Origin: Anaeramoeba ignava BMAN | Lineage: Eukaryota > Protista > Anaeramoebae | DNA length: 64,000 nucleotides | Assembly (NCBI GenBank): GCA_028826165.1 | Contig: JAPDFW010000053.1 | Coordinates: 1-64,000 of the forward strand | Reading direction: 5' to 3' | Shown: positions 53,998 to 56,900 of the stretch, one piece after another | How positions within the stretch are numbered: position 1 is the stretch's first letter | How the letters are laid out: each line of letters opens with the position of its first letter | Notes under the pieces: model-generated | Databases searched by the model: none | Told to the model about the DNA's origin: nothing | The model's input: only the letters and a program-made list of their open reading frames with translations | Position numbers and translations under genes: made by a program

Positions 53998-56900
53998 TTA
54001 AATGAAATAAGTCTCAAGTTCATCAACAACCCATTCATTAAAAGAACCAGCTAAATAACTTTTAGCTTCATTTGTATCATATTTAATTCCATTAGGTAGA
54101 TTATAACTTTGACCAAAATTTGATTCACCAGATTGTAAATCAGAATCTATCCAAATATCATCTATAAATATTTTAATAAAGATAAATAATTAATTTTAAT
54201 AATAATTAATAATAATTTAATTTAAAAATTAATTTTATTTTAAATTGAAATAATAATATTATTTATTATATTAATATTTTGGATTATTTATTAATTTTAT
54301 TTTAATTATAATAATAAATATTTATTAAATATAAATTATTTACCATCTATTTTAATAAAGATAAATAATTAATTTTAATAATAATTAATAATAATTTAAT
54401 TTAAAAATTTTATTTTATTTTAAATTAAAATAATAATATTATTTATTATATTAATATTTTGGATTATTTATTAATTTAATTTTAATTATAATAATAAATA
54501 TTTATTAAATATAAATTATTTACCAACTATTTTAATAAAAGATAAATGATTAATTTTAATTATAATTAATAATAATTTAATTTAAAATTAATTTTATTTT
54601 AAATTGAAATAATAATATTATTTATTATATTAATATTTTTGGATTTATTTATTAATTTAATTTTTAATTATAATAATAAATATTTATTAAATATAAATTA
54701 TTTACCATCTATTTTAATAAAGATAAATAATTAATTTTTAATAATTAATAATAATTTAATTTAAAATTAATTTTATTTTTAAATTGAAATAATAATATTA
54801 TTTATTATATTAATATTTTAGATTATTTATTAATTTAATTTTAATTATAATAATAAATATTTATTAAAATAATAATTATTTACCATCTATTTTTTAATAA
54901 AGATAAATAATTAATTTTTAATAATAATTAATAATAATTTAATTTAAAATTTTATTTTATTTTAAATTAAAAATAATAATATTATTTATTATATTAATAT
55001 TTTGGATTATTTATTAATTTAATTTTAATTATAATAATAAATATTTATTAAATATAAATTATTTTACCAACTATTTTAATAAAGATAAATGATTAATTTT
55101 TAATTTATAATTAATAATAATTTTAATTTAAAATTTAATTTTATTTTAAATTGAAATAATAATATTATTTATTATATTAATATTTTGGATTATTTATTAA
55201 TTTAATTTTAATTATAATAATAAATATTTATTAAATATAAATTATTTACTCCCTATTTTAATAAAGATAAATAATTAATTTTAATAATAATTAATAATAA
55301 TTTAATTTAAAAATTAATTTTATTTTAAAATTGAAATAATAATATTATTTATTATATTAATATTTTAGATTATTTATTAATTTAATTTTAATTATAATAA
55401 TAAATATTTATTAAATATAAATTATTTACCATCTATTTTAATAAAGATAAATGATTAATTTTTAATTATAATTAATAATAATTTAATTTAAAATTAATTT
55501 TTATTTTTAAATTTAAATAATAATATTATTTATTATATTAATATTTTGGATTATTTATTAATTTAATTTTAATTATAATAATAAATATTTATTAAATATA
55601 AATTATTTACTCCCTATTTTAATAAAAGATAAATAATTAATTTTAATAATAATTAATAATAATTTAATTTAAAATTTAATTTTATTTTAAATTTAAATAA
55701 TAATATTATTTATTATATTAATATTTTGGATTATTTATTAATTTAATTTTAATTATAAATAATATATATTTATTAAATATAAATTATTTACTCCCTATTT
55801 TAATAAAGATAAATAATTAATTTTAATAATAATTAATAATAATTTAATTTAAAATTTAATTTTATTTTAAATTGAAATAATAATATTATTTATTATATTA
55901 ATATTTTAGATTATTTATTAATTATAATAATATATATTTATTAAATAATAGATTATTTATATTTACATCCAAAACTTGGACCATAATCTAAATCATATTC
56001 AATTGCATATTCTTCTTCTCCTTGTTTAATTGTAAACTTTTCAGGTTTTCTATCTCCTTTATCATTTCTTAATGAAAAAATAAATGCATTTGAATCAATA
56101 ATATATCCCCAATCATAATTATCTTCTCTCCATTTTGATTTATCATTTGTCCATCCAACTTGAGTAAAACCTCCAAAAATGAAATCCTCTGTTGTTTTGA
56201 TAATAATTAATGTTTTTCCTTTATTATCAACTGCTTTATGCCAATTTTTAGAATTAAATCCATCTCTTTTTGCTGAAAATCCTTTTTTCATTTTAGAAAA
56301 AAAATTATTATCATTTATCCATTGTTTTAATTTCTTAACATATCCTTTTTCTTTAATAATTTCTGAATCTGAAAATTGAGGTAAAATCTTCAATAATTCA
56401 TTTTGGTTTTGTTTTGATTCTTCTTTTTGATTTTCTTTTTCAAATAATAATTTAATATTTTGAATTTCTTCATCTTTTTGTTTGAGAATTTTATCTTTCT
56501 TTTCATTTTCTTGTTTTTGGTTTTCATTTTCTGATTTTAAATTTTGATTTTCTTTTTCTTTCTTTTGAATTTCTTGTTTCAAATTTTGATTTTCAGATTC
56601 AAATGATTTGATTTTCTTTTCTTTCTTTTCATTTTCTTTTTCTTTCTTTACATTTTCTTGTTTGAGATTTTGATTTTCTGATTCAAATGACTTAATTTTT
56701 TTATCTTTTTCTTTGATTCTTTTTATCTCTTCTTTTAATTTTCTTTTCATTTTGTTTGATTTTCTTATCTTTTTCTTGATCTTGAATTTGAAAAATAGTT
56801 CTTTCAAAATGAATTAAAAAATAATTTGGAAGAAAAATATCAAATTGTTTTAATTTATCAAAATCTTGTTTTGAAATTGAATCTTTATCAAATAATGAAA

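Follow-up and report, generated by a model that had tools for sequence, protein, structure and literature searches.

Tandem arrays of intron units separated by variable nucleotide triplets in TLDc genes of Anaeramoeba ignava

Introduction

Spliceosomal introns can be gained by tandem genomic duplication (Rogers' AGGT model; Hellsten et al. 2011, PMC3265369; Ma et al. 2016, PMC4974935), in which a local duplication supplies both the GT and the AG and a transposon is not needed. The known cases are single events that duplicated exon sequence (PMC3265369, PMC4974935). Introners, or introner-like elements (Collemare et al. 2013, PMC3609843; PMC4457414), comprise many near-identical spliceosomal introns that are more alike than their host exons. 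They are scattered over unrelated genes and sites, and have stable folds in fungi and inverted ends and target duplications in algae (PMC3609843, PMC4457414). Here we describe a locus with features of both: a tandem array of ten intron units, separated by nine variable triplets, inside a gene for a TLDc-domain protein of the anaerobic amoeba Anaeramoeba ignava BMAN. The locus was studied in a stretch of 64,000 nt, called the window below (GenBank assembly GCA_028826165.1, contig JAPDFW010000053.1, positions 1 to 64,000, forward strand).

Other described systems share single features with this locus. The 3-nt micro-exons of animals (Drosophila, PMC8042270; the three-base exon of MAP4K5, PMC8632122) place a single codon between two introns, and those known are isolated, conserved and located between unrelated introns. 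In mutually exclusive exon clusters of the Dscam1 type, alternative coding units stand in tandem at a single point of a domain of the recognition type; their exons are about 100-300 nt long and encode whole sub-domains, and docking/selector pairing, shown by RNA data, enforces the choice among them. At the ratchet points of recursive splicing in long Drosophila introns, an acceptor abuts a donor and the exon has zero length (AG|GT). Satellite and minisatellite DNA under concerted evolution is homogenised within and between loci. In the literature we found no published description of tandem arrays of introns plus codons such as those reported below.

Results

Ten intron units interrupt a TLDc gene

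The gene lies on the minus strand of the window. Its upstream coding exon (55967..56750), recognised as an open reading frame (ORF) and by tblastn, encodes a coiled-coil region and the N-terminal part of TLDc, and is 100% identical to the hypothetical protein M0811_04754 of A. ignava. It ends with ...TTTTGGAT, after GPSFG and the first base, T (55967), of a split codon. The last coding exon (53998..54161) opens with ATGATATTTGG, of which AT (codon positions 2 and 3) completes that codon, and continues as DIWIDSDLQSG...ETYFI to a stop. The interruption is in phase 1: GPSFG is followed by T (55967), then by AT (starting at 54161), then by GAT ATT TGG.

Between the two exons, at 54162..55966, the junction scan and repeat finding revealed ten GT...AG units, arranged head-to-tail and 91-100% alike, each with its own GT and AG. 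Cut at the junctions they are about 177 nt each (range 172-182 nt), and all ten start with GTAAA and end with TAG. Tandem Repeats Finder describes 54169-55928 as a tandem array with a period of 180, 9.7 copies, 94% matches and a score of 3065. Repeat finding and junction cutting therefore agree on the ten near-identical units of about 180 bp that a first-pass annotation, made from the letters alone, had placed in the gap of the TLDc coding sequence. The G+C content of the window is 18%, which fits the published A+T richness of strain BMAN (genome 80.65% A+T, introns 91.86% A+T; PMC11550330).

A regular-expression scan of the minus strand of the window for TAG-NNN-GTAAA returned exactly nine junctions, all of the form AATAG, NNN, GTAAA. 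Numbered 1 to 9, the triplets are GGA (55792..55794), GGA (55611..55613), ATG (55430..55432), GGA (55250..55252), TTG (55068..55070), ATG (54884..54886), ATG (54706..54708), TTG (54524..54526) and ATG (54344..54346). Each is flanked by the acceptor AATAG and the donor GTAAAT, except that GTAAAA follows triplet 5. All nine triplets and their coordinates are as the first-pass annotation had given them, and the constant TAG and GTAAA around a variable triplet hold at every junction in the window. Translation likewise bore out the phase-1 position and the two extreme products that had been proposed: with all triplets skipped the gene reads G-Y-D-I, with all included it reads G-WRNGIDDVDD-DIW, and it is stop-free in both.

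The TLDc profile PF07534 is present in M0811_04754 and in all listed paralogs (precomputed domain annotation). The AlphaFold model of M0811_04754 has a mean pLDDT of 90.5, and its best Foldseek matches are TLDc domains (4ACJ, NCOA7, Skywalker and mEAK7; E about 2e-9, TM 0.68-0.77). The product of the window gene is thus confirmed as a TLDc-domain protein, by profile and by predicted fold. In the predicted model GPSFG lies in strand 129-133, followed by a turn (134-136) and another strand (137-140), which places the array at the tip of a beta-hairpin.

The array is a trait of a gene family

The 180-bp unit has at least 850 matches, at 96-99% identity, in the 42.8-Mb genome. Arrays are spread over about 20 contigs, and dozens of sister genes share the layout. 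The TLDc exon itself has hundreds of paralogs in the genome, and the unit matches that were listed sit just 3' of such exons. Family statistics refer to 21-23 arrays (from the 20 closest paralog loci, which were fetched) and to genome-wide pattern counts. A comparison of unit number and triplets among paralogous TLDc genes had been suggested at the outset; it was run on these loci, and all 20 of the closest paralogs carry 2-23 units straight after GPxFG, in phase 1, with varied triplets. One more array, on contig C137, numbers 27 units or more. Sister genes with long arrays lie, for example, at C137:748-753k and C117:46-50k. Special sequences mark the 5' end of the first unit (GTAAATATAAAT...) and the 3' end of the last unit (...AAAATATTTATAG), and both are conserved in nearly all sister genes. 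These common terminal ends indicate that expansion occurs in the interior of the array.

Over the whole genome, acceptor and donor of the strict junction pattern are 3 nt apart in 286 cases, 4 nt in 12 and 2 nt in one; spacings of 0, 1 or 5-12 nt do not occur. A reversed control pattern had no matches, so the 286 junction motifs are not due to chance.

Array-free relatives also occur. In the sister locus L017, a pair of more distant TLDc paralogs with 63-67% identity (3484-4002, plus strand; 5290-5826, minus strand) adjoins an array-bearing gene. Both lack an intron at the hairpin tip and encode their loops, of six and nine residues, contiguously. In public models across the TLDc family, the loop at the hairpin tip has 1-9 residues.

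The junction motif with variable triplets was also seen beside another TLDc subfamily (G000:C1:942542-1073180), with irregular spacings of about 150-300 nt; this irregular spacing suggests that the arrays there consist of another intron unit or of a degraded one. Signs of decay are seen in several sister genes. There are frameshifts in the last exon in loci L024 and L028, the last exon is truncated in L020, and it is missing from L026 and from the first gene of L013. Judging from these sequences, the TLDc family seems to undergo birth-and-death turnover.

Concerted evolution of the intron bodies

The intron bodies diverge by 2.8% within arrays and by 3.1% between arrays. Between the same genes, the flanking exons diverge by 11.2% (adjoining 300 nt) and 14.2% (adjoining 159 nt), and exon wobble positions alone by 8.5-13.7%. 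The introns are thus four times more alike than the adjoining exons, which implies that unequal exchange or conversion, both between units and between genes, makes them evolve in concert. Clustering by array is weak: the nearest neighbour of a unit is in its own array in 28% of cases, compared with 8% expected.

From these comparisons, tandem duplication of a split codon plus its intron, with concerted evolution throughout the family, is well supported. Intron multiplication by tandem duplication had been put forward in the first-pass annotation as a process caught in progress. The duplication part is strongly supported, since each copy has its own GT and AG and the arrangement recurs in 20 sister genes. 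The process turns out to affect the whole family and not to be one event caught in progress.

Apart from the triplet, the only variable columns of the unit are four C's, which are lost in 19-47% of units, to T and A alike and at sites that are unlinked, a pattern suggestive of repeated decay biased towards A+T. At the internal splice sites, acceptor G and donor G are each missing from only 3-6% of interior units, and are kept 3-14 times better than the C's.

The triplets vary independently of the intron bodies

Per-column variability was measured on 133-146 interior units. The first and third triplet positions (N1 and N3) differ from the consensus in 53-68% of units, with all four bases seen, and the second (N2) is T in 80-86%. 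The G+C content of N1 and N3 is 21-45%, compared with about 3% in the body, which is 97% A+T. Among pairs of units with identical 177-nt bodies, 72 of 82 carry different triplets, and triplet mismatch stays flat with body distance. Linkage of triplets to nearby variable body sites is absent; this is uninformative alone because the body sites are also unlinked among themselves.

Among exon codon positions, the composition of N3 is nearest to that of position 1 (G 0.37 versus 0.31), whereas N1 is nearest to position 2, and N2 to position 3. In form the triplets are y-T-x, the split codon x|yT rotated, and among the exon flanks of paralogs x and y vary while T is fixed, being present in every last exon. 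The earlier remark that ATG equals the first three nucleotides of the last exon therefore generalises, as the y-T-x form, across triplets. In the 20 codons on either side of the array, positions 1 and 2 diverge as fast as position 3 or faster, which points to a hypervariable surface.

Taken together, these patterns are indirect evidence that the triplets behave like coding sequence and that the internal splice sites are under constraint. The pattern of triplets and splice sites would fit serial splicing with the triplets included, and constitutive and alternative inclusion are alike compatible with it.

Satellites and other features around the gene

A 167-bp intergenic satellite with at least 31 monomers lies downstream of a sister TLDc gene (L022:2043-7368 in gene orientation; G000:C137, about 162.3-167.6k). 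Its consensus aligns to positions 14-176 of the intron unit with a score of 249, compared with 93 +/- 9 for shuffles. At the monomer junction of this satellite there is no AG, no GT and no variable spot; the presence of splice sites and of a variable spot is therefore tied to the genic context and not to the repeat itself. Weaker arrays akin to this satellite follow genes in loci L012, L013 and L017.

In the window, two arrays of a 143-bp satellite enclose the TLDc gene, one 3' of it (52538..53508; Tandem Repeats Finder and alignment) and its inverted partner 5' of it (58011..58969; alignment). They align with a score of 490 inverted versus 155 direct, and form a foldback-like frame around the gene. 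Kinship of the 143-bp satellite with the intron unit was considered and rejected, as the scores (118-123) are at noise level (shuffle maximum 119). A partial copy of the intron unit, its 3' third, lies on the minus strand about 240-300 nt past the stop codon (53693..53760) and matches unit positions ~130-176 almost perfectly by local alignment.

Upstream of the TLDc gene, BTB-like ORF pieces occur in other frames at 57149-57600 (minus strand), and the public model starts downstream of them. The true 5' structure of the gene, possibly encoding BTB, coiled coil and TLDc, may be mis-annotated or decayed. Elsewhere in the window, a candidate 4-nt micro-exon (TTTAG|TTTT|GTAATT, 51304-51307, plus strand) was seen between two large ORFs of a thioredoxin/PDI-like gene (50818-51303 and 51818-52243). 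A scan of the window for micro-exons besides the triplets yielded no more than seven candidates, all weak.

Discussion

Proposed origin and function of the arrays

As a whole, the explanation that we favour, and to which we would give slightly better than an even chance, is that a codon plus its intron was duplicated into an array, that the intron bodies are homogenised, and that the triplets are single-codon exons which vary the loop at the hairpin tip. The repeated unit is one split codon with its phase-1 intron, copied in tandem at one site. Unequal recombination or gene conversion keeps the intron bodies near-identical across genes, with the exons diverging and the triplets escaping. Every unit would be spliced as its own intron, making the triplets single-codon exons, and in the window gene the one-residue turn (Y) would be replaced by ten residues (WRNGIDDVDD). 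The identical 177-nt spacers could then allow unequal crossing-over to add, delete and reshuffle single codons. The outcome would be a loop that is hypervariable between paralogs, and probably between alleles too, on an evolutionary time scale.

Taken by itself, the proposition that splicing takes place at the internal sites, and that the triplets thus serve as single-codon exons which lengthen and diversify the hairpin-tip loop over evolutionary time, seems to us fairly probable from the genomic patterns described above. We attach much less credence to a bolder extension, in which the arrays are a codon-shuffling diversity generator of a receptor-like family. In that case the cloned introns would be recombination spacers, codons would be gained, lost and permuted in the germ line at a high rate, units would in addition be skipped stochastically in splicing, with many loop isoforms per gene, and the result would be a loop made of one-codon exons and comparable to a complementarity-determining region (CDR) in BTB/coiled-coil-TLDc proteins of a symbiont-bearing amoeba.

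Evidence against inclusion of the triplets

Several observations weigh against the inclusion of the triplets. The public model M0811_04754 joins 55967 straight to 54161, giving GPSFG followed by YDIWIDSD, although exons of 3 nt are beyond the reach of a gene predictor. No transcript-derived protein fragments turned up when the last exon was used as a query. Among the strict junctions in the genome there are none of 6 or 9 nt, lengths that would record intron loss through spliced cDNA.

The reading frame gives a mixed picture. Inclusion of all triplets leaves it open in 14 genes, which cover 83 junctions. One junction of 2, 4 or 5 nt breaks it in five or six long arrays of sister genes, and in one sister array an in-frame ATT|AGG stop arises on full inclusion, although the flanking exons of these genes look intact. 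Each of the 13 length variants of the strict pattern is a change of a single base within a base run, and the 2- and 4-nt junctions may be errors of nanopore assembly (the arrays being beyond short-read polishing) or real slippage. The first-pass annotation had stated that any subset of triplets keeps the frame and makes no stop. This is correct at the window locus, but not in all of the sister arrays, given the ATT|AGG stop and the roughly 4% of junctions with 2 or 4 nt.

Stops are found in 1 of 208 codons in phase 1, in 6 of 193 in phase 0 and in 47 of 164 in phase 2, but the openness of phase 1 is largely due to the y-T-x form itself. Against shuffles within arrays, one phase-1 stop was observed where the mean was 2.15 (P = 0.28, not significant), and pooled shuffles gave a marginal result (P = 0.045). 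On these values, depletion of phase-1 stops was discarded as support for inclusion. The correlation between the phase-1 residues (Y, D, N, F and I) and the loops annotated in other paralogs, which are rich in G, N, S and Y, is only weak (r = 0.23).

Alternative explanations

The best-surviving alternative, which we consider possible but rather doubtful, is that the array is an inert intronic satellite. The whole array would then be spliced out, in one piece as a 1.8-kb intron or else with the triplets skipped, the turn would have one residue, and the repeats would be an incidental result of tandem duplication in a region rich in satellites. The public model is of this kind, and the protein with all triplets skipped is intact and conserved in every gene, including those in which full inclusion would cause a frameshift or a stop. 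There is also no clear protection of junction length beyond the defect rate of about 4%, the stop test is not significant, the unit body is common to the intergenic satellite, and the window gene lies between inverted satellite arrays. However, neutral spacers would be expected to be A+T-rich and homogenised like the body, whereas N1 and N3 are saturated in diversity and much richer in G+C. Nor would inert repeats be expected to keep the G's of their internal GT and AG so much better than their C's, and the related intergenic satellite, which is unspliced, has no variable spot. Complete skipping would in addition make the loops of this subfamily the shortest in the family (1-2 residues versus 2-9 elsewhere), and would mean that nine intervening pairs of strong consensus splice sites are all ignored.

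Alternatively, diversification might take place at the transcript level, with units skipped stochastically or by regulation (in combinatorial or mutually exclusive fashion) and many loop isoforms made from each gene. We regard this as unlikely. At the window locus every subset of triplets is indeed in frame and stop-free, and, with T at N2 in about 85% of triplets, nearly all pairings of triplets are free of stops; in some sister arrays, however, triplets ending in T stand upstream of triplets starting with AG, so that not all subsets are stop-free. From general knowledge of splicing, a 3-nt exon may bring the acceptor and the next donor into steric interference, and arrays with one defective junction could stay in frame if that unit were skipped. 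On the other hand, short introns with consensus sites are normally removed constitutively, and no RNA structure of the docking/selector type was found that is better than shuffles (one unit folded, z = +0.73).

A mobile introner is a far weaker candidate still. On this explanation the 177-nt unit would be a transposable, intron-generating element that inserts beside its own copies, with the triplet as a target-site product. The hundreds of near-identical copies that are more alike than their host exons would agree with such an element, as would the different triplets that flank identical bodies. Yet all the 180-bp units among the matches listed and placed are at one homologous site of one gene family, inverted repeats occur only at the noise level of 70-76% A+T, and the same folded unit gave no stable RNA fold. 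Neighbouring triplets are not preferentially identical, unlike a 3-bp target duplication, and the conserved ends specific to the first and last units fit interior expansion. An assembly artefact is scarcely credible, as each unit has its own variants and the layout is found at about 35 loci.

Implications

If the triplets are spliced in, the spliceosome of A. ignava routinely handles long chains of one-codon exons, and introns and codons have been gained together by copying "intron plus codon" many times. The introns would then act as recombination spacers that let a protein loop vary residue by residue, and dozens of proteins would be wrong in current gene models of this species. Should the triplets never be included, the locus would still be unusual, and the arrays would still offer a natural system for concerted evolution and splice-site selection, in which introns are four times more alike than exons and a tiny spot escapes homogenisation.

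Comparison with known systems

Known intron gain by tandem duplication and the arrays of A. ignava have in common that a local duplication supplies the splice sites. Unlike the known events, the arrays contain copies of an existing intron plus one codon, up to at least 27 times, at the same site in dozens of paralogs, and these copies are kept alike. With introners they share the great number of near-identical introns, but among the matches listed the A. ignava unit is confined to one site of one family, is tandem, and is without a stable fold or inverted ends.

If spliced in, each triplet would resemble an animal micro-exon in being a single codon between two introns and in adding one residue to a surface loop; the A. 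ignava triplets differ in being hypervariable, up to dozens in a row, and located between cloned introns. The likeness to Dscam1-type clusters is in the placing of tandem alternative coding units at one point of a domain, whereas the units here are 3 nt long and the one intron unit that was folded showed no docking/selector structure. As in recursive splicing, acceptor and donor are juxtaposed inside a long interruption and stepwise removal would be possible. Unlike at ratchet points, the junctions measure 3 nt in 286 cases and never 0, so that the triplets would stay in the mRNA on stepwise removal.

As in satellites and minisatellites, the 180-bp units are homogenised within and between loci, and their 167-bp sister forms intergenic arrays. 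What sets them apart from plain satellites is that consensus splice sites bound each unit, that a codon-like spot escapes homogenisation, and that the arrays stand at one coding position.

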